A stretch of DNA of 63,037 nt, the filler included, from Klebsormidium nitens (lineage: Eukaryota; Plantae; Klebsormidiophyceae), in NCBI GenBank assembly GCA_000708835.1. It is 7 parts of 7 records of this genome, joined end to end, with 100 filler letters (N's around TTAATTAATTAA, not from the genome) between each part and the next. Parts side by side here need not be neighbours in the genome. Positions count along the whole stretch, not along the records: positions 20,943 to 31,979 come from DF238138.1; 6 more parts are not named here. One strand, given 5' to 3'. Below the pieces are notes generated by a model. It was given only the letters and a program-made list of their open reading frames with translations, was not told where the DNA came from and did not search any database. The position numbers and the translations under genes were made by a program. Below, piece after piece: positions 1 through 32,079 of this stretch; the first letter of the stretch is position 1, and every line of letters begins with the position of its first letter.

Positions 1-997
1 ATGCGCGCGCGCGCACGCTCAGGACACGCTATGGCAAGGAGCCAATCTGGCGTGACAGCGGTCAACAAAATCCTGTCGAGAACGAGGTTAGGCTTAACCA
101 GTCGTAATCGTTACAGGGAGGCACCAGGGCGGATAGATAGATGGAGGCACCACGGAGAGGTAAACGCGTTGTATTTGAACGGCCTTCAGCAGTATTCAGA
201 GGGGAGCACAAGGAGGTGGGAAGACTTTAAGCTGTGCCAAGGGTCATTGACCACCCCAGCTTTGGGAAGAGCTGTGCTACCCTCACTTTCCGTGTTGTCG
301 CTGGGTGGCTCATGACCTGAGGTTCGAAGACTCCGGATGATCCTCGGCGGGAAAAGTCAGAGCCTTGGTTGAGCTTCTGACTCATCAGCAGCACATGCTT
401 CCTTGGTATCTGGAACGGTTTCAAGAACCTCGAAGATTCATGTGAGCTGCAGACAGCGTTCTTCTCAGGTCTCGCCAGAGTTTTTTTGTGATGGAGCACT
501 TTGTGCGACAGTCGTGGAGCTTGCAATGCCTGGTCAGCGCAACCTCGGGCCGCGTCGCTGCGGGCAGCCGAGGCTTAATTCGAGTGGTGGGCGCACCGGA
601 CGAGAACACGCTGCTGCAGGCAAGCATTCTTCCCAGTGAGCTGATTGTGTGGGCCACCTGTGTTGGGCGGGGGGGTGGAGGCAGGCTGTCGTGTTTAGTG
701 TCAGAGTTGTGCAAGAGGGTTTGTTAGTGTCTACTCTTCTGGTGATATGGCTCAGGGCGCTTCTTGCGGACCACAATTATTGTTTAGTAGTCTACACTCC
801 GTTGTGCAGAAAGTTGCGGTCCTTTGTGGTACACAACTGGCCAGGCAGATTCTCCAAGAGCCACGCGCGAAGTTGTTAGTTGAAAGGGTCCTTCCCAAAA
901 AGCCCTGTGTCAGAACCTGGTGGACCAAAATAGCGATGAGCGTCCAAAAAGTGTTATGATGTGTTGGTTGAATCCTCCTTATTTTGTGCACTTGCAG

Positions 998-9220: not shown

Positions 9221-10009
9221 AACATTATCAATCGTTTAGCTTTGTACACAAGGAGTTCATGCAAAAATGCATACCTATGGGGCATGTTGCCTTGCAAGTA
9301 GAAAAAAGTCGGTACATACCGTACTACATAGCCTAATTACGCAATGTATATATCCGTATCAGTCAACAAATTCAGTGGGATCAAGGGTTGCGCCGGCAGT
9401 TGTTGATCTCTCTTCCTTCCAGATAAATGACCCGCAATTGCGCACCTGACCATCTTCAGCTAGAGACAGGATGATCTCAGGATGATGATTTCGTTGGGAG
9501 TGATCGAGCTGCTGGGACCTACAGACTACAGCAGGTGTCAACTTTGTCCTCAAATCCAGGTCCGCCGAGGCTTCCCCGGTCTAGGAGTACTACCGGTTAC
9601 CGGTAGTGCTCTAGAGTCTACGCTTGGCCCCGGTCGAGGGCTGCGGGCCAGATACTGCCGGAAGTAAAGATATGCAGGCCGTTGGATCATCAATGGATGT
9701 ACATCGCAAGGCAGATAGTCCAACTGAAATTGAACTCACCGGGTACCCATACCAGTACACAGTGGTACAACCGTACATACGCAGTACACTTCGAAGGAGG
9801 GCACTGGGCGGGCTGAGCCGGAGGCGATTCAATCCAAATTGCACGTTGGGAGAGCTTGCATCCAGGGCGTGTGCAAGGTATTTGTTTGAGAGCAGCCTTT
9901 AGGCCTGTGGCAGCCTGCCTGCTTCGAGCCTCCCGGCCAGGCTCCCTGGGGATCCCTCTCGCAAGATGCGAGGCATTCTTGGAGGAATCTGACGTGAATA
10001 CATCTCGGT

Positions 10010-20942: not shown

Positions 20943-21562
20943 TCATACTCAGTATGGTCCAAACATCATGACTTATGATCGACAGTGCATACGGTAATAT
21001 GAGGTTTCGCTCATAATATCGGAGAGACTGGGTTGGTCATCGGATCATTTGCGCGGGCGGCCGCCTAGCCCCGCCTAGCTGAGCCCCCGCCCGGCCCGTT
21101 AGAAGACGGTAGGTAGTGAATGAAGCTAACACGTGTCTGACTTGTTCTTTAGACAAAACAAATCTCGCTATCTTGGGAACGCAAGTGGTGCATGAGAGTG
21201 CTTAATTCGGCGCTGCCATTCGTACTATCACTAATTAAGGTATGTTGCGCTATACTAAGCTAGCATGAAGCTAGCAAGACTCGCAGCCTTGCCAAGCCCG
21301 TCACACTGGGATACTGGGATATGATCCCAAAGTTGGAACGCGATTTCATGGCCTTGAGTCTCGTATGCATCCGGACAATCAGTGTAACGGCCGCTTCTTG
21401 TGAATGTACAAGTTGCATGAATGATTATCCAAAAATTGTGCACTTGTTCTCATTCCAATGTGCCTTCACTACTTTTCCATCAGCTAGGTTTGGACCGATG
21501 TATAGCACATGAAGATCCGGGACGGTAGCTAGGCGTCAGAACCCAAACATTTATTCCCATGT

Positions 21563-21610
21563 ATGCCATGGAAGCCTTTGGCCCATGTGGCTACGGCAAT
21601 TGAAAAGACA
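21563..21610 (+). repeat. Dispersed repeat copy 2 (partner at 9173-9220)
   Basis: atgccatggaagcctttggcccatgtggctacggcaattgaaaagaca, same orientation as copy 1. Confidence 0.8.
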
Positions 21611-23084
21611 ACATCATCCGGCTGCGGGGAGATCCTCAAAGAATTGGGGTGTACATTTTCGTCACACAAGTAAAGCCGCCAACATTAAGCCCTAGTACAC
21701 ACCGGCCAAGTTGAAGATTCTTAGAATGGCATTATAGTGATTGAATTGATCAAACGACCAGCAAGTATTACAAGTGCGTGCACTTTATCCGCATGCAAGA
21801 TAGTTGTCGCAAACCCGACAGCCCAAATTGAGCAACAAGACACAAAACCATTTGATCACACTTCAAAAATCTACGTACGGTAGTTCCGGTCTTCCAATGG
21901 TTCAGTACGGTGGACATCGATGCGCTTGTGGTGAGGCGTACGTACTCCCAATAAGCGAAAATGTCGACAAGGTAAAAGGTTCAGAATGTCAACCTACACA
22001 AAGCACGTCTGCTAGCCCTCATACTTGAGTCCACGCTAAGACCCTTGCTCGGAGAGTGGCTGTTCACAGTCATTTGGGTCCTTGAGCAGGCGGATTGAGA
22101 GTGGAGGGGTTACCCGTAAGCTTTGCTTCCACATGGAAGGCGGCAACGCTGTCCCTCTCATGATGACCCTATTTTTGACCAGCTACTGCATGCCAACAGT
22201 CTAAAGCCCGCCCCGACATTTGACAGCCGGCGCGGCGCTTCCTGATCCACAATCTACTCTGATCCCCCTGATCTCTGAGCTCGATACTCAGCTACTCTTA
22301 GACTGCCCACGACACGTATAAGAAAAAGCAAAGGCGTGTGACTGCGGTGCGAGTGACTACATCCGACAAGCTCCTACGGCGATAACACGACGACACAACC
22401 TACAAACCCTAGCCAGCATCAAAGGTCCTAGAAATGGCTTAACCGTGGCACCAATGGGCACTCCTCAACGGTAATATCAATGCTGGGTAAGCGCGCTCCT
22501 CTGGGATTCCCAAACCCTTTACGCGCTCCTCGGAGCCCGATCTGATCGCCAGACCGGAGCGGTCAGATAAGCTATCTGTACAGCCGACCAGGGCCCCAAA
22601 TTGCCGGCTTTCCCCAGCAAGTATAAAGCTCGCCGGTCGCAAGCGACGCAGCATCTGATGACGTGCGTATCGGACGCAAGCCCACTCACGCACGCCGTCC
22701 AAAGCCTGCAACCTGTGTGCACCTGCCGTTTGACGGAACCCTACAACCTGTGACGTCACAGACCTCACGGAGCTGCCTCTCCCGAAATCGATCTCTTCGA
22801 CGGCGCGGCGCCACCTCACGCACAGGGGGTGATGCTCCACCCCCCCAGCGCACGGCGCTCCGCTTCTAAACGTTACCCACGCCAGTCGACTTATTCTTCC
22901 AAAATCCTTTCCGCATCAGGATCAACATCTGCACTGATTCTCAGACCCCTTCACCTCCGGATCCGGCTTTTCAGACCCAGCAGAACCTTCAACACCCTTC
23001 ACATTCCCAAATCCCCAGGACCTCCGCGTGTTTCATCCAGCAAACCCTTGCAGGAAACTCACAACCTCCCGCTAACCCCGCTTC

Positions 23085-26000
23085 TCAGCTTCCTGCCAGC
23101 TGTCCCGCCGGCAGCTGTCCGCCGTCGCCGCTGCGCCCCTCCTCCTTCTTCGCCACGTCAGCCCACGACGCGGACCCCCCCTCCAGTGCGGACGCAGCAG
23201 GCGCCTCCCACCCGCCCGAAAAGGCGTCCAAAACGCCGTTCGAAATGCTGCCCCCCGGGAACGCGCCCCCAGCGCTGTTGCTCCTGTGGAACAGGGGGGG
23301 GGTGGCCTTCGCCCCCTCTTTCTCCCCCCCGCCCGCGGTCAGCCGCTCGACCGCCTGCTGCAGGGCCTGCGTCTTCGCGGGGCCCTCCTCCGCGAGCCCC
23401 TGCTGCTCGGGCCCGGGCGACTTGTACGCCCGGAACCCCTGCGGGCTGCCGCCAGCTGTCAGGTTCTCGGACGGCGCGTCCAGGGACAGCGTCCGCGGGA
23501 GCATGTCGGACGGCGCCTTGCTCGCCGTCTTCTCCGATTCGGGGGTGTCCTCCAGAACCACAAAGCGCGATTTGGTGAGGGGCCCCTTGGCGAGGGGAGG
23601 CGCCGCCAGCTTCGGCCGCGGGCTCGCGATCTCCCCCCCGGTTTCAGCGGCGCCAGGTGTCGGCGGCTTGGCTGCTTCCGGACGCGGGCTGTCCTTGCGG
23701 GGGGACAGTTTGCCCTTGTCGGGGGAACCCCCCTCCGACAGCACCTCGTCCAGCATCTTCCCGACCAGCTCCGCGTGGCTGTCGTCGTCCTTCGGACCAG
23801 TCACCTTCGGGCCGTCCGAACCGTCTCCCGCACTGTCCGTATTCTTTGCCCCCTCGACAACCGCCGGGGTGACTTCTGGAGCGTCCGCCGACAGCTTGGC
23901 GCTCTCCCCGTTTCCGTCTTTCTTGTTTGCCTCGGCAGCGGAGCCGCGCGCGCTGAGCTCGAGTTTCTCGAGCAGCGCGGCCTTCTGCTCCTGCTGTCGC
24001 TGGCGGAGTGCGAGTTCCTCCTCGCGCTGCTTCTTGCGCAGCTCGAGCAGCTCTTCCGTGTGCGCCATCTCCATCTCGCCAAGGGCGTCCTTGTGGTTGA
24101 TCGCCGTCGTCAGGTTTGCCGCGATTTCTTCCTCCAGCGACTCCATCTGCTTCTCCAGCCTGCGATGTTGGCGGAACATTTTGAGGTTAGCAATGGAACC
24201 GGAATCAGTAAAGAAGTAAAAATCGCAGCGCGACTGTCGCAAGAGACAACCTGCTTCAACAAGCGTGAGCTGCCGTTCAAACAACCGCAACTACGTTCCC
24301 TAAAGGATCCATCTGTGTATTCAGCGAGAAGAGGACACGACAAGTTGGTAAAGCCCCATGTATCCACATCGGGCTGTGGACGAACTCGAAGAAAGTGCGA
24401 TCGCCTGGCTGGTACATCCTCTACGTTCGGGAAGACCAGATGCTTCACCAGCACCTTTCCGACCAGCATTTGTTGTCTATGTAGCAACAGGCCCCAAGCA
24501 ACATCAGGCACACGAGAAATCAAATTTGCCGTTCATCCAGGCCGATCCCCTCTCGCTAAGCGGCTTTCCCTCAACCGAGCGGGCTACTCTCGGAAGATAG
24601 CAATGATACAGACCCGCAGAATCCTGACACCCACCTGGCCTTCTCGCCCTCCTCCTCTGCCCCGTCCTTGAGCGTCTCGAGCGCGCTCAGGCGCTTGGCG
24701 TCGGACGCCTCCCGCTCGCGGCGTTTGGCCAGCGCGTCCTGCTCTGTGGCCGTGAATTGCGTCGCCAGCTCCTTGAACTTGCCGTCGTAGAACAGCTCCT
24801 GAGACTCCAGCTGAAAACCAAGAAGGAGACGAACTAGGGACCGAGTAGTAGACCGAACGACCAGGGCTTTTTGGTCCTGATCTATCAAACAGAAATCCGA
24901 GCAGTATCTGAAGACGCTCCCATTTGCAGTAAGCCTGATCCACCAAGAGAGGGGTCACTGCACTCAAGTTCCGGCTGCTGCTGACAGGCGAGGCGGTCCA
25001 CATGGAGCAACTACGTTGTCGAACATACACAGAATTTGAAAGAAGTTATCGCCCAGAGGCTCGTTTAGTGGACCCAACCGTACCAGATCCTACCAACCCT
25101 CCTAGGATCATTGGCTCCGCTCACACCCAACAAGTGCTTGACCCTTCGGCGGCTGCAGACAATCAAAAAGCATCGCAAGCCCTCACAAGCCCTCACCGCC
25201 CTGCACCTAACCTCCTCCTCGTCCTTCTCCTTTTGCGGCTGCAAAGAACCTCAGATCCTCGCAACCCTCTCACAAAATCGTTTCAAGGGCTCTAAAGCTG
25301 CTCAAAACCGTTGCGCCAGCGCTCACCTCCTCCTCGTGCTTATCCTTTTGCTGCTGCTGCAGCTGCTCCATCTTGGCGTAGCGCTCCTGCAGGTTGCGCA
25401 GCTTCTTGCTCTGCACGCGCAGCTCGCTCTCCGCGCGCGCGCGCGCGCCCTCGTCCTCGGCGGCCTTCTCGCGCAGGCGCGACACCTCGCCCGCCTCCGC
25501 GAGGCGCTGCTGCTCGCGGCGCGCCTTCTCGTCGTCGACCGCCTCCTTCTTGGACTCGGTCCACCACTTGACCAGCTGGCCCGCCTTGCCGTTCTTGCCC
25601 TTGGCGAACTTGTCCAACTGCAACAGAGGGGGGAAAAACGCCGTTGTCAGCATCAACAGTTTCGTCCGCAGTTTGTTTGGAGTCAAAGGAAAGGGTTATA
25701 GAGTCCACATGTGACCCAGGTGTGGACAAGATGAGATTGAAAGGCAGGAAACGCTGCAAAACTTTGAACTCCAGTGCACTTGGTGGTCCGAAACAATGGT
25801 GTGGCCAGCGCTTCAAGCAGCCCAAGACTCTTTGGTTCCAAATTGTTGCCCGCAGAACCGAGAGACGAGTTTGCTCTCCGAACTTTTACAAATTCTCATA
25901 TCTGTACCAGCAAGCTAATTCTGATGAAGGCAACTTTCAGAGATGCGCACAGCTTCCGGGTCACAAAAAGAGTATAAGCAGAGCAGTGCTGTGCTCCTTA

Positions 26001-29000
26001 TATGCTCCTCGTCGCCATACTGCTGGCACACCGGCCCAATCTAGATCTCAATCAGCACAGCTCATCTGACAGTTCACCAAACGTGCTGTGGCACTTCACC
26101 AAGAACCACACACTTGCAGCCACTTCCACAGATATGCAGCCAATTCCACAGGATCTGTTTTGAGGTATCCAGCTAATAATGACAGAAAGGAGAGCTCACA
26201 AAAAGATTCAAAGAATTGGATCAAGCAGGCATGCGCAAAATTGCTCACCGCAGCCCTGATGTTTACGTGAATCCTTCAGCCCTGAAGGGACAAGAAAGGC
26301 TTGACTGCGCCTTCCTTTCAAAGAGGAGGTTGCGAGCTACCAACTCGAGTGAGCATCAAAAGACTGGGTCCATCGAAAATAGAGATTTACAAAGCAAGCG
26401 GTAATCCAGTGCCTAACTCAAAATGGCAACGGGATACCTTCGTTACCATAACATCTCTCGCAGACAGCGACACCAAAGGAACAAACCTCTGCACCCAGGC
26501 CCAAAGCGCCTCAGATACAAGCTAAGTGACTCGTGAAACAGCCACAGCGTCTCGATTGGCTTCACACTATCTTCAGGGTTCATAGCAAGTGGAGGAAATG
26601 CACCACTGACGCCTTTGCGTGCTTTGAAGACACAGTCCTCAAAAAGAGCCAGCATAATCAATTGTCTGGTTCCGACAAGAGCCCCAGCACAACATAGAGC
26701 ACACTACTAGAGCAACTCATCCAGATAAAGGAGCCTTGCTTCTAAGGGAGCCAAGCAACAACAATTGCAATTGCCACGAGGAGATAGCATGCGATTGACG
26801 TTCTCCATAACCAAACAGGGACGACGGTGCTACTTTCTCGGCCATCTTTAGCAAGAGCGGTGTGAGCTTATCGAGCTCAATCACCCTTCATCATTGGCAG
26901 CAAACACAAGGGGCTGATGTCAAGCAAGAGCGAAACTTAGAGGACAAGGGAGCCTTCCTCACTGCCAAAAGATGTGCGAGAACATACGTAGTTGCATGAT
27001 GCAAAAACGGGCTTTTTTATCAAACTACTATTACAGCCACTTCCGCATTCTGATGCTCTTCAAAATCTCCCAGGACAAGATCATGTATGCTTCTAACGGT
27101 ACGAAGCAAACATGCCAAAAGTAAGCTCTTCATATATCAAACAATCCACAAGAAACGCTCGTAATTGCACCCAAATCTTTCAGAATCTACTCAAGCCAAG
27201 CCCTGCCAATCCTCACCTGCCACATGTCCTTTGGTTGCGCCAGGTAACCAAAAACAAGCAGGTTGCCCTCCTCATCAAAGCGCTTGCTGCGGATTCCATG
27301 GGACTCCCAGCCCTCGCGCCCCCGGCTCTGCTTCTCGAAGTACTGGCTCAGCTGCACCGCCTTGTCGAAGCCGTACGGATCGGCGGCGAACTGGACCACA
27401 ACACAGCCCTGCCGAAACGGAGAAGCAAATGACCAACATTGCAGTTAAAAATCCTGGAATATTATTCAATACATTTATATGTTTTTTATCTAATAAATCT
27501 TTATTCTTTCTAATTTCAACAATAAAGTGGTGCTGACAGAGTCAAGCTCTATCCACACAATTGCTGCAGCACGTGTGGACATCTGCGATGTCGCCAGAGA
27601 CCTTTCCAGCCTTATGTAGCGTTTCCTCAATTGACTGGTTTCCCCAAAACAATGAAACGGTTGGCCTCACCCTCCAAAAATCTTAGAAACAAAAGCTGTT
27701 GCGACTACCTACTGGTGCCAGCATGTTTGATGACGCAGACACACAGACAGCTAACAATAACAAAAGCAAAGCTCTAAGGGCAGTCCACAGCCAGTCAAAA
27801 AGAGCCATAGGCCAGGTTTCTCTTCTGCTCACCTTGTGACCATCTGGCCCATATGCGGGGCGCACCGCCATGGGGTTGAAGCTCTTGTACTGGTCACGAA
27901 TCTCGGTGGCGCCGAGGCCGTTCCAATGGCCGTCAGCATCCATCCTGACGCGCGTGTTCTGCAGGATGACCGCTGGAGGCCACACAATGATCTGGTCGTC
28001 GTCTTCCACAGGCGGGAGGAGGATGCCGAGCGGGCCTGGAGAAAAGAACGTGACGAAGATTGTGTCAGCAATTGCAAACTTGAATAGATCTACTCCTCAC
28101 CAGACATCAGCCGGCATCTCACCTATTTCAACTGTCAACGACATCAAATTGCGTAAAGCTGAACCTATCACAACGTTTCTTGTGCGAGATGGCATTGTGA
28201 TGACTAGATCAGCTGTATGCGGATAATTGCCTGCAATTGAAGCCAGGCATGTCATTCATCACAACCAAATGAACAGTGAGCTTGCCACAGAATGCTCCAA
28301 ACAGCAGGCGCAAACCTTTACAGAAGACACCTCTTCACAAGACTCGTGTTGGCTTGGTGCAGAAATGAACAAAGCAGTTCTGCAAGCACTTTTGGCATAC
28401 TTACATTCAGCATACTTACATAAGTCAATGGGATTCATGATAGCTGGTGGCGCAATCGAAGCTTGACCGGCTAGCGTAAGTAAGTCCAAACATCCCGTAA
28501 GACGTTATGCATCAACACTTAATACATGCGCTAGAAAGCTGAAACGATGCTGACGGAGTGAATGCTTTTTCAGACATGCAATAAAGCTGAAATGATGCTG
28601 ACAGAGTGGATGCTTCTTCCGCAGAGTGCGCAAGACACTGTCCAGCCTCAAACCTTCTGAATAAGCGCAGTAGGACCTCTATGCCTCAACAGACCTGTCA
28701 GACAAACAAAACCAGGCCAAAACCTCACCCATGGGGTCCCTGCTGAGAAGCTCGCGCAGGGCTCGGGCCAGGCCCCTGTGCTGGATGCGCCACTCGTTCT
28801 TCTTGGTCTCGGCGTGCTGGTGCAGCGCGTGCAGGCTGTTGAACCAGAACTTGGTGCGGTTCTTGCACACCAGGCACTTCCACTGGTCCTTGGCGCCGTC
28901 ACCTGTGCAAAGACTCGCTCAGCATTCAGCTCACTTGTACAAGGAACATGCCGACTGAAGGCTCTGATGCACAAGACAGCTCAAGGTCACCAGGATGCAA

Positions 29001-31326
29001 GAAGGCGTTCCAGAAGCGACATGATCCGAATCGAGATAGAGTGCGTACAAAATCTGCCTCGACTCAATTGAATCTAAACAAGCTTTGCAATGATCCAGAC
29101 CAATTTGCCAAATGCAGAGGAAACAATATAATGAAAAATGGGTCTGCAACATGGAAAGAGCGGGCCAAGGTAGATGAAAGGCAGACCGGAGCGCTCTAAT
29201 ACCATATGCAGAAGAAGACTGCGGACATGCTCTGAACAGACCGGAACGGGGGCACTAAAAACATACGCCATAACGAGTTCCTGACAAATTGAGACGCTAA
29301 TACGTCTGACAAAGGCAGCTTTCTGCTGTTCCAATGCACGCCAATGACAGGCATATAATGGCAGCACATGTGCCAAAAATCTCGCATAGATGATGCAGCC
29401 TCCACACGAACAACTTAATTGAAACATGCTATGTCGATGACATCAAAATGTTTGCACAAAAAGCAGCCCAATCAGGATTCAAAACCCAAGCATAGAAAAG
29501 CCAGTGCCACCAAAACCCGCCAGAGTGGCCACAGCAATGATTACCTTACATTGACAGCTCAACTTGATTGCCAATATGCAATATCCATACAAAGCTGCCC
29601 CAATCAGCATGTTGTACTTTCAGAAAGTGCTGATGCATACGCAATGGTAATGGCGGAACCAAAAACCCTGTCTGATTGATCGTTCGAAGGCACTAGAATG
29701 AACAATCTGACGACAAAAAACAAAGTGCTGCACAAGGTTGACAGCACACAAAAAGTGCTCCCCTAATCACAAAGAAAGCATACATCCACCAAAAAAACTT
29801 TGCTGTCCACAAGGTTGCTCACCTTTGCTGGCCTCCTGCAGCAGCTCAAGATACACTCTCCTGTATTTCTTGTATGCCTTCTCCTCCTTCTCCTTGGCCA
29901 ACCCCTCGAACCCTTCCAGCTCGTCATCGGACGCAATGTCCAGCTCATCGCTCTCACTGTCGCTGACCCCCATTGCAGAGCTCCCTGCCATGCTCGGATA
30001 ATCGGGGTCCCGAAACCCCTGGAGGGGCCCTGCATTGCCCCATGGCGGCACCCCCCGGTTGTAAAACTGGCTGCTCGCATCCTCATACCTGCTCGAATTC
30101 ACACTCGGTGCACCCCTTCCATCGCCAGGGTGTGGCCAGTTGCCCTCCGGAAGGTACGGCGCACCCCTGCTGCGATTCGCGGCAAAACTGCCCCCCTCAA
30201 AACCCCCTCGGCCACCAGGAGGACCGCCAGCCCAGCCACCTCCCCTGCCTCCAGGCAAACCATACCCAGGGCCTCGCTCAAATTGCATCATCTGGGACTC
30301 ATAACCTGGGTTGATGTGCTCCCTCCCTCCGCTGCCAACAGAGGAAGCAGAACCAGGTCGAGGGAATGCGCCGTAAGCTGCTTCCCTTAGATGCATCGGC
30401 ACATGGACCGGATCATCTGGTGGCACGTTGCCATACCCGTACGCGCGATTGCTGAACTCCGAGCCAGCGGTCCTGTAGCTCAACCTGTCAGATTCATACT
30501 CCTCGTACGCGCGCTTGTCATCGACCTTGAGCATAGTCTGCTTCTCAAAACCCCAGCCTCTGTTAGTAGGAATGGGACCCTTATAGACTGGGGCTGCGGG
30601 CGCGGAGCCTCTCTTCGTCCTGTTTCCAGGGGGCCTAAGTGCCATCCCGCCTCTTGCAACCGCAGCAACCCTTGATTTGCTCGTCCGAATTGACTCCTCG
30701 TCCCACGTGACTGAGGGAGGGCTCGGCTGGCGTGCCGTGGGGCTGATACTGTGCTGGCTGCCCCAACTGTTCTGAGGAAGAGTCGGGCTCTGCCATCCTG
30801 CGGAGCTCCCAACTCCGATGCTCACAGGCGGGAGATCCCAGCCTCTTCCGTGAGGGGTGTCTGGCGGGGTGTGAAGAGGCCCTGAGGCACGGTATTGTGC
30901 ATGCGGAGCGCGTGCCGGCACAAACTCCCTTGCATTAGGATCCTGCCACCCATGGCCCTTGGGTCTGTTACCAGGGGTTCCCAATGACGCTGCTGACAAG
31001 AGTTCCCTTGCACTCCCGCCCCCATCAGCCCAGTGAGCCTCCCCTCCCCTCCCCTGCAACTCCCAACCATTTGGTTGAGGGCTAACTCGACCAGAAACCC
31101 TCTGGCTGACCGCCTCCTGAGCACTTCCGGCGTCCCATCCCCTGTTGGCTGGCACATGAAGGGCGTTCCCACTATCCCAATTAAGGGTGGGAGAGACAGT
31201 CCCAGAACCCCCTTGCTGGGGCAGAGAACTGTTACTCCATCGCGGAGCTTCCTGTCCAGGGGCATCAGACCACTGCCACCCAGCACCTCTGGCTCCAGGA
31301 GGCAGGTCCCAACCGTTTCCGGCCAT
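23085..31326 (-). CDS. SGS3: SGS3-like RNA silencing protein (long GW/RGG-rich N-terminus, zf-XS, XS domain, coiled coil, low-complexity tail), 7 exons
   Basis: Exons (minus) 29823-31326, 28729-28902, 27833-28035, 27217-27408, 25327-25617, 24635-24810, 23085-24159, phases consistent. zf-XS QWKCLVCKN...LHALHQHAETK...QHRGLA; XS IIVWPPAVILQNT...W.GLG..E...RPAYGPDGHK|GCVVVQF...RG.EGW...VFGYLA..KD; followed by E/K/Q/R coiled coil. Confidence 0.88.
28535..28618 (+). repeat. Intronic tandem duplication, two 36-nt units at period 48
   Basis: aaagctgaaacgatgctgacggagtgaatgcttttt vs aaagctgaaatgatgctgacagagtggatgcttctt (4 mismatches), in SGS3 intron 2. Confidence 0.75.
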
Positions 31327-32079
31327 GAGAAAGCCTGTGACGGTGCGCTTCCTCCAGTTACACAAGGGATTCTTGAAATGCAGACTGGCAACTCAACTGC
31401 ATTTGGAGAAACATGGAACCGAACGAGCTTCTCCTCCAACAACACCTACTCAAAGTGGAATGACTTTACACAGCTCGCCACGCTCTTCACCTACATGATT
31501 AACATAGAGAACATGATGCAGCCTACAGCCACCTTGACCAAACCCCTCGCCCCGTCCTCCCCTGCTATCCAGCTGCCTAGCTTCTGTCCTTGCTGTTGAG
31601 AAGGCTAGGACCGCAGTGCTGCTGAGTGCTGCTGCAACTTTGCTCCAAGTCTTCTCCTGGGGCTGGAGTAGGCTTAAAAGCGACAAGAGCTTACACAACA
31701 ATCTGTTCTTAGAAGCCTTATCTAGATGGAGGTGCCTCCAGTGTCAAGATTCGTCGCTGGGGAAACGGTCAGTTCCTACTCTAGTGGCAGTGCATGCCAC
31801 AATGGCATATGGTTTACGCCAGATATTGTAGGATGACGAATGTCAACCGTCAGATGGAAAGTTGTCGAGCGATCCGACGTTTTGTTAGCCAACGCAAAGG
31901 CTTATCGACGGCTCTAAAGTTCCTTAAACAAAATGGACGGTTCACAACAAAGGTACCAAGATCCAGCTCAGTGATGGGTNNNNNNNNNNNNNNNNNNNNN
32001 NNNNNNNNNNNNNNNNNNNNNNNTTAATTAATTAANNNNNNNNNNNNNNNNNNNNNNNNNNNNNNNNNNNNNNNNNNNN

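Follow-up and report, generated by a model that had tools for sequence, protein, structure and literature searches.

The window analysed here, a stretch of 63,037 nucleotides from Klebsormidium nitens (assembly GCA_000708835.1) in which positions 20,943 to 31,979 come from DF238138.1, carries on its minus strand the SGS3 orthologue of this klebsormidiophyte alga. Its first exon encodes an N-terminus of about 460 residues that is predicted to be intrinsically disordered, is under strong purifying selection and contains 17 tryptophans. By analogy with Arabidopsis SGS3, this 17-Trp head is probably an enlarged Argonaute-docking region. What is new is the threefold expansion of tryptophans in an early-diverging streptophyte alga, together with a conserved PAM2-like island.

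The SGS3 gene and its product

A first-pass annotation had placed an SGS3 homologue at 29823-31326 with the strand left out. A plus-strand reading of this interval is ruled out, as its translation is full of stops; the reverse complement is a single open frame of 501 codons that starts MAGNGWD. The full model comprises seven exons and encodes 1204 aa, with the following features:

31327..31608, minus strand: 5' leader of the mRNA, at least 282 nt, unbroken with exon 1 (RNA-derived contigs reach 31608)
31358..31414, minus strand: putative 18-codon upstream ORF within the 5' leader, ~88 nt ahead of the main ATG
29823..31326, minus strand: coding part of exon 1, 501 codons plus one base with a phase-1 donor, encoding the predicted disordered N-terminal region (open frame, RNA joint to 28902)
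28729..28902, minus strand: exon 2, zf-XS-like zinc finger, WKCLVC...HALHQH (RNA-contig joints)
27833..28035, minus strand: exon 3, N-terminal half of the XS domain (Pfam XS and RNA joints)
27217..27408, minus strand: exon 4, C-terminal half of the XS domain (Pfam XS and RNA joints; loose end leading to 25617)
25327..25617, minus strand: exon 5, start of a charged helix-type, coiled-coil-like region (start from the RNA loose end)
24635..24810, minus strand: exon 6, continuation of the coiled-coil-like region (placed by GT-AG, frame, Interfilum cDNA and tblastn to two orthologous loci)
23085..24159, minus strand: exon 7, which finishes the coiled-coil-like region and adds a long disordered C-terminal tail and the stop codon (ORF, model)
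23145..23222, minus strand: two Trp motifs in the C-terminal tail, SGGWEAP (W1164) and SASWADVAKK (W1179) (gene model)

The gene is expressed. RNA-derived transcript contigs, drawn from four runs belonging to as many studies, join exon 1 with the zf-XS exon and continue into both XS exons through minus-strand GT..AG joints that connect 29823 to 28902, 28729 to 28035 and 27833 to 27408. The exon 1 donor GT lies at 29822-29821 and its joint to 28902 is found in all four runs, so that the continuity with the zinc finger on which the first-pass annotation depended is real. The end of exon 5 was set by GT-AG, reading frame and Interfilum cDNA. A 27-nt mini-exon candidate between exons 5 and 6 (PQKEKDEEE, ~25213-25240) was left out of the model because the Interfilum cDNA runs directly from ...HKEE to LES.... 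The same seven exons are present in two orthologous genomic loci, L001 and L002, and each of the three genes has an upstream ATG opening a short ORF, at -88 here, -87 in L002 and -89 in L001. Rfam, tRNA and tandem-repeat scans of the window gave no matches.

The identification as SGS3 holds. The XS domain (PF03468) is matched by exon 3 at 47.5 bits (profile positions 1-56) and by exon 4 at 35.4 bits (59-111), both above the Pfam cut-off of 25 and jointly spanning positions 1-111 of 113. The zinc finger had been called canonical; the exon is there, with its CxxC...HxxHxH pattern and its position upstream of XS kept, but it scores 15.1 bits, under the 22-bit cut-off. It is 100% identical in L001 and L002 and near-identical in Interfilum, whose SGS3 was handled as an SGS3 with zf-XS/XS domains by Morozov et al. 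(PMC5907777). Residues ~715-915, the supposed coiled coil, are rich in K/E/R/L/Q, and their only Pfam matches are weak ones to helical families.

Two published sequences are orthologues: the SGS3-like GAQ92898 of Klebsormidium nitens (Morozov et al., PeerJ 2018, PMC5907777), with which the gene here may be identical or closely related, and the SGS3 of Interfilum paradoxum (1KP FPCO_2030239, PMC5907777). The latter has the same motif order from MAGNGWD to the C-terminal SGGWE/SASWAD, with 17 Trp in its disordered region, GHGWQDPNAREFVPA, the acidic patch and the zf-XS/XS core, and it repeats the Trp motifs of the C-terminal tail nearly letter for letter (FSGGWEAPAASALDGGSASWADVAKK).

Layout and conservation of the N-terminal region

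Every motif listed in the first-pass annotation, including its 11 GW/WG tryptophans and GRGG/ARGG boxes, was recovered on the minus strand of the 501-codon exon. Tryptophan accounts for 3.4% of exon 1 residues, and 11 of the 17 adjoin Gly: NGWD (W6), AGWQ (W17), RGWD (W64), NGWE (W88), HGWQ (W127), RGWD (W163), AGWQ (W178), SWG (W188), RGWG (W258), GGWA (W365) and PWG (W429). Gly is over-represented at the -1 position of Trp (binomial P = 5e-4) and Asp/Glu/Gln at +1 (P = 1e-4), and the residues flanking Trp are small or polar in 82% of cases and bulky hydrophobic in 8%. The exon divides into the following segments:

30547..31326, minus strand: W-rich segment, residues 1-260, with 14 Trp and only 2 Tyr and 2 Phe (composition, spacing, internal repeats)
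30913..30984, minus strand: 24-residue island LGTPGNRPKGHGWQDPNAREFVPA, residues 115-138, with the PAM2-like core PNAREFVP (alignment)
29977..30546, minus strand: Tyr/Phe/Gly/Arg-rich segment, residues 261-450, with 12 Tyr, 7 Phe and 3 Trp (composition)
30190-30255, minus strand: RGG boxes GGRGGGW...GGRGGF, residues 358-379, within the Tyr/Phe/Gly/Arg-rich segment
29881..29970, minus strand: acidic patch, residues 453-482, SDSESDELDIASDDELEGFEG... (charge scan)
29827..29928, minus strand: predicted helix at residues 467-500, ...KEKEEKAYKKYRRVYLELLQEASK, that connects to the zinc finger (AF2)

In the W-rich segment the Trp lie ~10-30 residues apart (median ~14), mostly as [G]W[D/E/Q], and a module GWDLPP...AGWQ is duplicated at residues 5-18 and 162-179. 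The RGG is preserved in L002 and Interfilum and reads RGA in L001. The charge scan gives a net charge of -10 over residues 441-480, and the acidic patch occupies the position of the acidic patch/NCR of Arabidopsis SGS3. The prediction of disorder comes from AF2, which, with an alignment of three sequences, gives exon 1 a mean pLDDT of 38.6, with values below 50 for 451 of its 501 residues and for almost all of residues 1-459. The helix is the sole confident element (block pLDDT 64-83), and the SGS3 of Coleochaete has a similar AYKKY...EL at this point.

Selection on the exon is strong, with dN/dS of 0.04-0.05 at dS of 0.6-1.8 against L001 and L002, and of 0.01 for the acidic patch. Against L001 exon 1 is 84% identical, and tblastn gives ~77-78% for the C-terminal XS half and for the exons of the coiled-coil-like region; exon 7, also by tblastn, is 63% identical to L001 and 89% to L002. 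L001 and L002 share every one of the 17 Trp, and so, compared by eye, does the published Interfilum cDNA. AREFVP is likewise identical in the two loci and near so in Interfilum, so the conservation in close relatives that the first-pass annotation looked for is present. By residue, conservation is 17/17 for Trp, 13/13 for Lys, 36/38 for Arg and 16/17 for Tyr, as against 27/49 for Ala.

A neutral low-complexity sequence would produce GW motifs as a by-product of its G-rich composition. Gly makes up 15% of exon 1 residues and some GW pairs are therefore expected, the mean in residue shuffles being 4.8 Gly-adjacent Trp; the 11 observed are reached by only 31 of 20000 shuffles, all 17 Trp are retained in four taxa, and a dN/dS of ~0.05 with near-saturated dS effectively refutes this reading, to which we attach a vanishingly small probability.

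Relatives outside this group are scarce. HMMER with exon 1 against 1.84 billion cluster representatives gave a lone match, a 357-aa fragment from a close relative, and a word-indexed search of 5.8 billion proteins, with a length range of 275-877 aa outside which full-length SGS3 falls, gave two close relatives only. A feature search of the ESM Atlas returned no usable match, and metagenome scans with alignments of exon 1 and the zf-XS exon gave pattern matches with no confirmed relative among them. As just one related protein was found among the 1.84 billion representatives, homology to the Arabidopsis region is positional and compositional rather than alignable.

Probable Argonaute docking and alternative readings

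The N-terminal disordered region of Arabidopsis SGS3, with its GW/WG Trp and acidic patch/NCR, has been described in two preprints (Lopez-Marquez et al., bioRxiv 10.1101/2025.10.18.683247; Fujimoto et al., bioRxiv 10.64898/2026.01.02.697351). Five Trp and the acidic patch are needed there for siRNA amplification that depends on the AGO1 pockets, and plants in which these Trp are replaced by Ala or by Tyr, or in which the charge of the patch is reversed, have the phenotype of AGO1 Trp-pocket mutants (bioRxiv 10.1101/2025.10.18.683247). The acidic patch/NCR is required for secondary siRNA. A direct interaction of the disordered region with AGO1 could not be demonstrated in vitro by the Arabidopsis authors.

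The comparison with land-plant SGS3, drawn from literature descriptions, reveals an order shared with the Arabidopsis protein: W-containing disordered region, acidic patch, short basic/aromatic helix, then in the alga a zf-XS-like finger, XS and a coiled-coil-like region. The Trp are often Gly-adjacent in both, and the algal protein is, like its counterpart, a presumed partner of RDR6. The alga differs in having 17 Trp in ~460 residues where Arabidopsis has 5 in ~200, which bears out the earlier remark that the land-plant N-terminus is shorter. It also differs in its separate Tyr/Phe/RGG-rich segment, its PAM2-like island, the two Trp motifs of its long C-terminal tail, and KAYKKY in place of KWFK/RWFK; owing to this last replacement the motif filter of the 2025 survey, by its stated rule, would have excluded this SGS3. 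The disordered-region sequences themselves cannot be aligned.

Contact with Argonaute through GW motifs, as the first-pass annotation proposed, is plausible by homology with Arabidopsis SGS3 because the layout matches that of a protein for which genetic evidence shows a joint requirement for the Trp, the acidic patch and the Trp pockets of AGO1. The Trp side chains would act as multivalent short linear motifs entering the Trp-binding pockets of an AGO1-type Argonaute, and the acidic patch would assist by pairing with the basic surface round those pockets. Target-bound RISC could in this way recruit SGS3, and hence RDR6, for synthesis of double-stranded RNA, while the aromatic and Arg-rich middle segment probably contributes to condensate formation and RNA contact. 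One RDR6 is encoded in each of K. nitens and Interfilum, along with AGO1/5/10-type proteins, and the AGO1-type proteins of these algae were reported in one phylogenomic survey to be without the DDH slicer triad. Taken whole, an enlarged modular SGS3 disordered region, with Argonaute-docking Trp, an acidic patch, a condensate segment and a helix leading into zf-XS, is on balance the probable explanation.

Against this explanation stands the conservation of Tyr, Phe, Arg and Lys, which is almost as high as that of Trp and fits a sticker-and-spacer condensate equally.

The aromatic and Arg residues might then be no more specific than the stickers of a prion-like or RGG-type region, which would serve phase separation into siRNA bodies and non-specific RNA contact with no docking into Argonaute pockets. 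The RGG boxes and the Tyr/Gly-rich segment exist, and conservation covers the aromatic and basic residues alike but not Ala, Ser, Val and Ile, which vary. The PrLD of Arabidopsis SGS3 drives condensation, and in vitro, pieces of the Arabidopsis disordered region form condensates and adhere without selectivity. Stickers alone would not account for the segregation of the residues, 14 Trp against 4 Tyr and Phe in residues 1-260 and 3 Trp against 19 Tyr and Phe in 261-450, or for the specific context of the Trp, with Gly at -1 and Asp/Glu/Gln at +1. Moreover, replacement of Trp by Tyr in Arabidopsis, which keeps aromaticity, still abolishes AGO1-pocket-dependent siRNAs, and in another study the PrLD was dispensable for siRNA production. 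We regard condensation without docking as rather unlikely.

Motifs containing W serve several pocket-bearing partners, as is established for GW182, and the algal Trp could dock elsewhere than on Argonaute, either in the Trp pockets of CCR4-NOT (CNOT9), as the silencing domain of GW182 does, or on RDR6/SDE5. The sole genetic evidence on SGS3 Trp points to AGO1 pockets, and such a partner is highly improbable.

Resemblance to plant GW/WG Argonaute-hook proteins (NRPE1, SPT5L/KTF1, SDE3, NERD) lies in multiple Trp with small or polar flanks in a disordered silencing factor; the structured domains and pathways are other ones, and NRPE1 and SPT5L bind proteins of the AGO4 clade. Among algae, Entransia SGS3 has a like order, with a short W-containing region, acidic patch, helix and zf-XS (2018 supplement, PMC5907777). 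The N-termini of Zygnematophyceae and Coleochaete SGS3 are not W-rich in the sequences available from that supplement, some of them 5'-partial transcripts, and the W-rich trait is thus not uniform among streptophyte algae.

The PAM2-like island and the GW182 comparison

The island, whose motif may also be written GHGWQDPNAREFVPA or GHGWQDPNAREFVP (island peptide NRPKGHGWQDPNAREFVPARAP), contains WQDPNAREFVP at 30916-30948 on the minus strand. It is invariant across this gene, L002 and L001, the DNA alignment showing third-position differences, and Interfilum has one conservative change of R to K. In the definition of Kozlov and Gehring (2010), PAM2 has Leu, Pro or Phe at position 3, Asn or Ser at 4, Pro or Val at 5, Ala at 7, Phe at 10 and Pro at 12. 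The motif reported in the first-pass annotation is there and agrees at positions 5, 7, 10 and 12 (P130, A132, F135, P137); it departs from PAM2 at position 3, where Gln128 stands in place of a hydrophobic residue, as that annotation had itself cautioned, with a Trp at position 2, and at position 4, which is Asp129. Pfam PF07145 scores the island at 11.6 bits (E 0.24) against a cut-off of 20, covering profile positions 8-15 of 18 only, and gives no PAM2 match when the whole of exon 1 is searched. Neither the ELM PAM2 pattern nor a full pattern built from the Kozlov-Gehring definition matches. A PDB sequence search with a 30-residue island at E up to 10 found nothing, PAM2 peptides there being mostly shorter than 20 residues. 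With canonical PAM2 (Paip2, ataxin-2/CID, eRF3) the island shares the core P-N-A-[KR]-E-F-V-P and a disordered context. It is a conserved linear motif resembling the C-terminal half of PAM2, and by its sequence binding to the MLLE domain of PABP is possible.

Were GHGWQDPNAREFVP a variant PAM2 docked on MLLE, SGS3 would bridge AGO-RISC, poly(A)/PABP and RDR6 in a GW182-like coupling. PAM2 is the sole Pfam family reported for the island peptide, the core pattern arises in just 1.8% of shuffles of the exon 1 protein, and variant PAM2 motifs with unusual N-terminal halves are known (eRF3 PAM2-C, LARP4, GW182); the fit at four positions and the invariance of the island speak for the coupling too. 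Apart from Gln128 and the failed Pfam and pattern searches, it is opposed by the Asp at position 4, where Asn/Ser touches Glu587 of MLLE (Kozlov-Gehring). The remaining disordered region is almost as conserved, and conservation is therefore not island-specific. Entransia and Coleochaete SGS3 lack the motif (2018 supplement, PMC5907777), and none was seen in the partial Zygnematophyceae N-termini of the same source. Of 179 papers that combine two or more of SGS3, PAM2 and MLLE, the 15 ranked highest make no mention of SGS3. The coupling is accordingly unlikely.

The N-terminus had been called GW182-like. Searched against Pfam at E up to 1, exon 1 matched no family, and so no Ago_hook, UBA, TNRC6 PABC-binding or RRM domain; with no GW182 family domain on the exon the term is an analogy only, and by its sequence the algal SGS3 is not a member of the GW182 family. 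The likeness to animal GW182/TNRC6 is that one protein combines a disordered multi-GW array with a PAM2-type element and is expected to act as an adaptor downstream of Argonaute. It is a likeness without homology; the structured part of the algal protein is a zf-XS-like finger, XS and a coiled-coil-like region, its PAM2-like element lies inside the GW array, and its expected output is dsRNA via RDR6, not deadenylation. The boldest proposal is that klebsormidiophyte SGS3 is a functional GW182 analogue, in which the 14-Trp array would clamp one or more non-slicing AGO1-type proteins and a variant PAM2 would bind MLLE, delivering a polyadenylated target to RDR6, land plants having later trimmed the array to five Trp and lost the PABP contact; we consider it quite unlikely.

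Nor is the protein an undescribed silencing scaffold, as had been suggested. The link between SGS3 GW motifs and AGO1 is in the October 2025 preprint, and Interfilum SGS3 appeared in print with this N-terminus in 2018, although Morozov et al. built their phylogeny on the zf-XS/XS core only and make no comment, in the portions of the paper available, on the N-terminus, its GW motifs or the PAM2-like island (PMC5907777).

Apart from any role with AGO or PABP, the locus is a clean example of a disordered region under very strong purifying selection. Binding of PABP by the island, if it occurs, would for the first time connect the siRNA amplifier with the poly(A)/PABP state of its template. Streptophyte algae are where SGS3 first appears, Klebsormidiophyceae being the deepest lineage in which it is known. 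A W-rich disordered region with an acidic patch is already found in their SGS3, far larger than in the land-plant form, and this would date the GW-pocket connection of Argonaute with the RDR6 amplifier to the origin of the SGS3 protein. The algal SGS3 also offers a naturally high-valency form with which the Arabidopsis model could be tested, direct binding having proved difficult to demonstrate there.

The SGS3 gene and its transcripts

The sequence observation of the first-pass annotation at 29823-31326, the first exon of an SGS3 homologue, was confirmed on the minus strand. A plus-strand reading was rejected because its translation contains many stop codons; the reverse complement stays open for 501 codons from MAGNGWDLPP onward and lies in a 532-codon minus-strand ORF. 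Pfam places the XS domain in two halves, in minus-strand ORFs at ~27.9 kb and ~27.3 kb (47.5 and 35.4 bits; cut-off 25), and gives a weak zf-XS match at ~28.8 kb (15.1 bits; threshold 22).

Contigs from four public runs, belonging to four separate studies, were aligned over 25700-31650. Their totals of 33-44 Mb and a coverage limited to exons are typical of transcriptomes. All four runs contain the joints 29823 to 28902, 28729 to 28035 and 27833 to 27408, each GT..AG on the minus strand, and contig depth is ~100-290 in exons versus 0-26 in introns. The doubt that exon 1 might not be spliced to the zf-XS exon therefore does not refute the annotation, as RNA-type contigs of every run join the two. 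Upstream of exon 1 the transcript is unbroken as far as 31608 or beyond, so the 5' leader measures 282 nt or more. A loose contig end at 27217 points to 25617, and the exons beyond were deduced from GT-AG sites, reading frame, an Interfilum cDNA and tblastn comparison with two orthologous genomic loci. The resulting model has seven exons and 1204 residues.

Intron 4 (25618-27216, minus strand; 1.6 kb) is wholly covered by low-depth contigs in all four runs (depth 6-26 versus 100-290 in exons), and introns 1 and 3 are covered in part by smaller ones. Unspliced pre-mRNA is their probable source; intron 4 may alternatively hold a separate or antisense transcript, since the strand cannot be read from the contigs. 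Between exons 5 and 6, 27 nt at ~25213-25240 (minus strand), flanked by AG and GT, encode PQKEKDEEE in frame; the stretch is missing from the Interfilum cDNA and could be either an alternatively used micro-exon or a coincidence. Long plus-strand ORFs of 249, 324 and 461 aa at 22829-24671, antisense to the GC-rich last exon, most likely reflect a GC content of 69% rather than genes.

HMMER with exon 1 against 1.84 billion cluster representatives returned one match, a 357-aa fragment of 88% identity, and a word-indexed protein search one further relative at 95% identity. The contigs that encode these two proteins are the orthologous loci, each with the seven exons of the window gene:

L001: 165-kb JGI metagenome contig, orthologous locus
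L002: 12-kb Logan contig, orthologous locus

Figure S6 of Morozov et al. (PeerJ 2018, PMC5907777) prints the complete SGS3 cDNA of Interfilum paradoxum, a member of the Klebsormidiophyceae. Compared by eye, its product begins MAGNGWDLP, as in the window, and keeps 17 of 17 Trp in unchanged order together with the string GHGWQDPNAREFVPAHPPHAPYR; it also shares the acidic patch, the zf-XS/XS core and the C-terminal FSGGWEAP...SASWADVAKK. This match, with the K. nitens SGS3-like protein GAQ92898 named in the same paper, identifies the window gene, by sequence, as a Klebsormidium-type SGS3. Other lineages printed there differ. In Entransia the N-terminus is short, holds Trp at four sites (MSW, RGWNQ, EDWG, QSWAD) and is followed by acidic patch, helix and zf-XS; Coleochaete has the acidic patch without Trp, in a transcript that may be 5'-partial; and the printed Zygnematophyceae N-termini are not W-rich.

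In each of the three loci a short upstream ORF begins ~88 nt ahead of the main ATG. Its position is kept in a leader that has otherwise diverged, and a role in regulating SGS3 translation is possible:

Window, 31358-31414, minus strand: peptide MFLQMQLSCQSAFQESLV
L002, about 221-277, plus strand: peptide MSLQMHLSCQSAFQVSLS
L001, about 9408-9452, plus strand: peptide MQLCCLLPLPVLNL

A constrained, tryptophan-rich N-terminus

All 11 GW/WG contexts listed at first pass occur in the exon 1 translation, as do the RGG boxes (GRGG, ARGG, GGRGGGW...GGRGGF). Exon 1 has 17 Trp (3.4% of residues), with nine GW and three WG dipeptides. Eleven of the 17 adjoin Gly, against a mean of 4.8 in shuffled residues, and 11 or more were reached in 31 of 20000 shuffles. 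Gly is enriched at -1 (P = 5e-4) and Asp/Glu/Gln occupy +1 in 9 of 17 (P = 1e-4); residues within ±5 of a Trp are 82% small or polar and 8% bulky hydrophobic. The Trp context is thus non-random, Gly aside too. Composition changes along the region:

Residues 1-260: 14 Trp, 2 Tyr, 2 Phe
Residues 261-450: 3 Trp, 12 Tyr, 7 Phe and RGG boxes
Residues 441-480: net charge -10

The two-Trp module GWDLPP...AGWQ is present twice (residues 5-18 and 162-179) and NRGW two more times, recurrences that suggest growth of the array by internal duplication.

The region is predicted to be disordered and is under unusually strong purifying selection. In an AlphaFold2 model built from a three-sequence alignment pLDDT averages 38.6, with 451 of 501 residues below 50 (nearly all of 1-459) and one confident helix at 467-500. 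Against L001, dS is 1.8 (near saturation), dN 0.096 and dN/dS 0.054; against L002, dS is 0.60 and dN/dS 0.042. These ratios, with near-saturated dS against L001, led us to reject a neutral low-complexity reading. Every 30-codon window with a computable ratio has dN/dS of 0.14 or less, falling to 0.01 in the acidic patch and helix. Identity to L001 is 84% in exon 1, ~77-78% by tblastn in the second XS half and coiled-coil-like exons, and 63% in the C-terminal tail.

Exon 1 residues conserved between the window and L001
Trp: 17/17
Lys: 13/13
Arg: 36/38
Tyr: 16/17
Phe: 9/10
Gly: 68/76
Ala: 27/49
Ile: 3/6

The zf-XS exon (28729-28902, minus strand) encodes protein 100% identical across the three genomes, with near-saturated synonymous sites against L001; its zinc finger is a shortened, clade-specific version, WKCLVCKNRTKFWFNSLHALHQH. 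The end of the otherwise fast-evolving tail (23145-23222, minus strand) holds SGGWEAP and SASWADVAKK, which form a further small cluster of W-containing linear motifs at the far end of the protein and are nearly letter-identical in the Interfilum sequence of PMC5907777. The printed Entransia N-terminus contains a resembling QSWADEVEY.

The PAM2-like island

WQDPNAREFVP was found at 30916-30948, as annotated. PAM2 is defined by a hydrophobic residue at position 3, polar Asn/Ser at 4 (contacting Glu587), Pro/Val at 5, Ala at 7, Phe at 10 and Pro at 12 (Kozlov and Gehring, PMC2854688). Aligned as G1-W2-Q3-D4-P5-N6-A7-R8-E9-F10-V11-P12, the island satisfies 5, 7, 10 and 12; positions 3 (Gln) and 4 (Asp) depart from the definition and the Pfam score is below cut-off. 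For a 30-residue island peptide PAM2 was the sole Pfam family reported (11.6 bits, cut-off 20; E 0.24), aligned over profile positions 8-15 of 18 only; a scan of whole exon 1 reported no family. Neither an ELM-style regular expression nor the full Kozlov-Gehring-based pattern matched the exon 1 protein, and the core [PVT]xAxxFxP arises in 1.8% of its shuffles. Across three genomes no residue of the 24-residue island differs, and the DNA alignment shows differences at third positions; the Interfilum sequence (PMC5907777) has one conservative change. Several other exon 1 stretches are as conserved. SGS3 was absent from the 15 best-ranked of 179 publications that contain two or more of SGS3, PAM2 and MLLE. 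That the island is a PAM2 variant binding MLLE seems unlikely; we keep the reading because variants with atypical N-terminal halves, such as eRF3 PAM2-C, bind MLLE (PMC2854688).

Proposed Argonaute docking

In Arabidopsis, the disordered SGS3 N-terminus has five Trp, often GW/WG, and a conserved acidic patch (residues 149-193); one and the same subset of RDR6-dependent secondary siRNAs depends on these and on the Trp-binding pockets and surrounding basic surface of AGO1 (bioRxiv 10.1101/2025.10.18.683247, October 2025). Trp-to-Tyr substitution gave no rescue, evidence for specific docking over condensation alone; direct SGS3-AGO1 binding was not demonstrable in that work. The Trp and acidic patch are kept across 196 plant species (same preprint). 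Another preprint distinguishes in this N-terminus a prion-like domain from a negatively charged region, the latter essential for siRNA production (10.64898/2026.01.02.697351). Module order is the same in the algal protein, so an Argonaute-hook reading appears well founded by homology, but the principle was already known. The papers found mention neither a tripling of the Trp array in an early-diverging lineage, nor the separate Tyr/RGG segment, nor the PAM2-like island. The 2025 survey, which mentions neither algae, Klebsormidium, PABP nor PAM2, used a KWFK/RWFK motif to delimit the disordered region; the window protein has KAYKKY instead and would therefore drop out.

Trp intervals in the first 208 residues are mostly 10-36. 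Several TNRC6 GW motifs are reported to fill pockets on one or closely spaced human Argonautes (Elkayam et al. 2017), and by analogy we infer that the algal spacing would suit multi-pocket binding. Likeness to GW182 is functional at most, that of a multi-GW disordered adaptor downstream of Argonaute. The protein is not a GW182 family member, because its structured part is a zf-XS-like finger, XS and a coiled-coil-like region and Pfam detects no GW182 family domain. The earlier interpretation is partly supported: the Argonaute hook stays plausible by homology, the likeness to GW182 is an analogy only, the scaffold is not undescribed, and the PAM2 assignment is weakened.

The best explanation is a Klebsormidiophyceae SGS3 orthologue with an enlarged, strongly constrained, Trp-rich disordered region. 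This region would most likely serve as a multivalent Argonaute-docking platform and probably also contribute to condensate formation and RNA contact; it carries the conserved half-PAM2 island. In K. nitens, Interfilum and Chara, according to one preprint, the AGO1/5/10-type proteins lack the land-plant DDH triad; if that is true, a GW-adaptor-centred mechanism would become more attractive in these algae.
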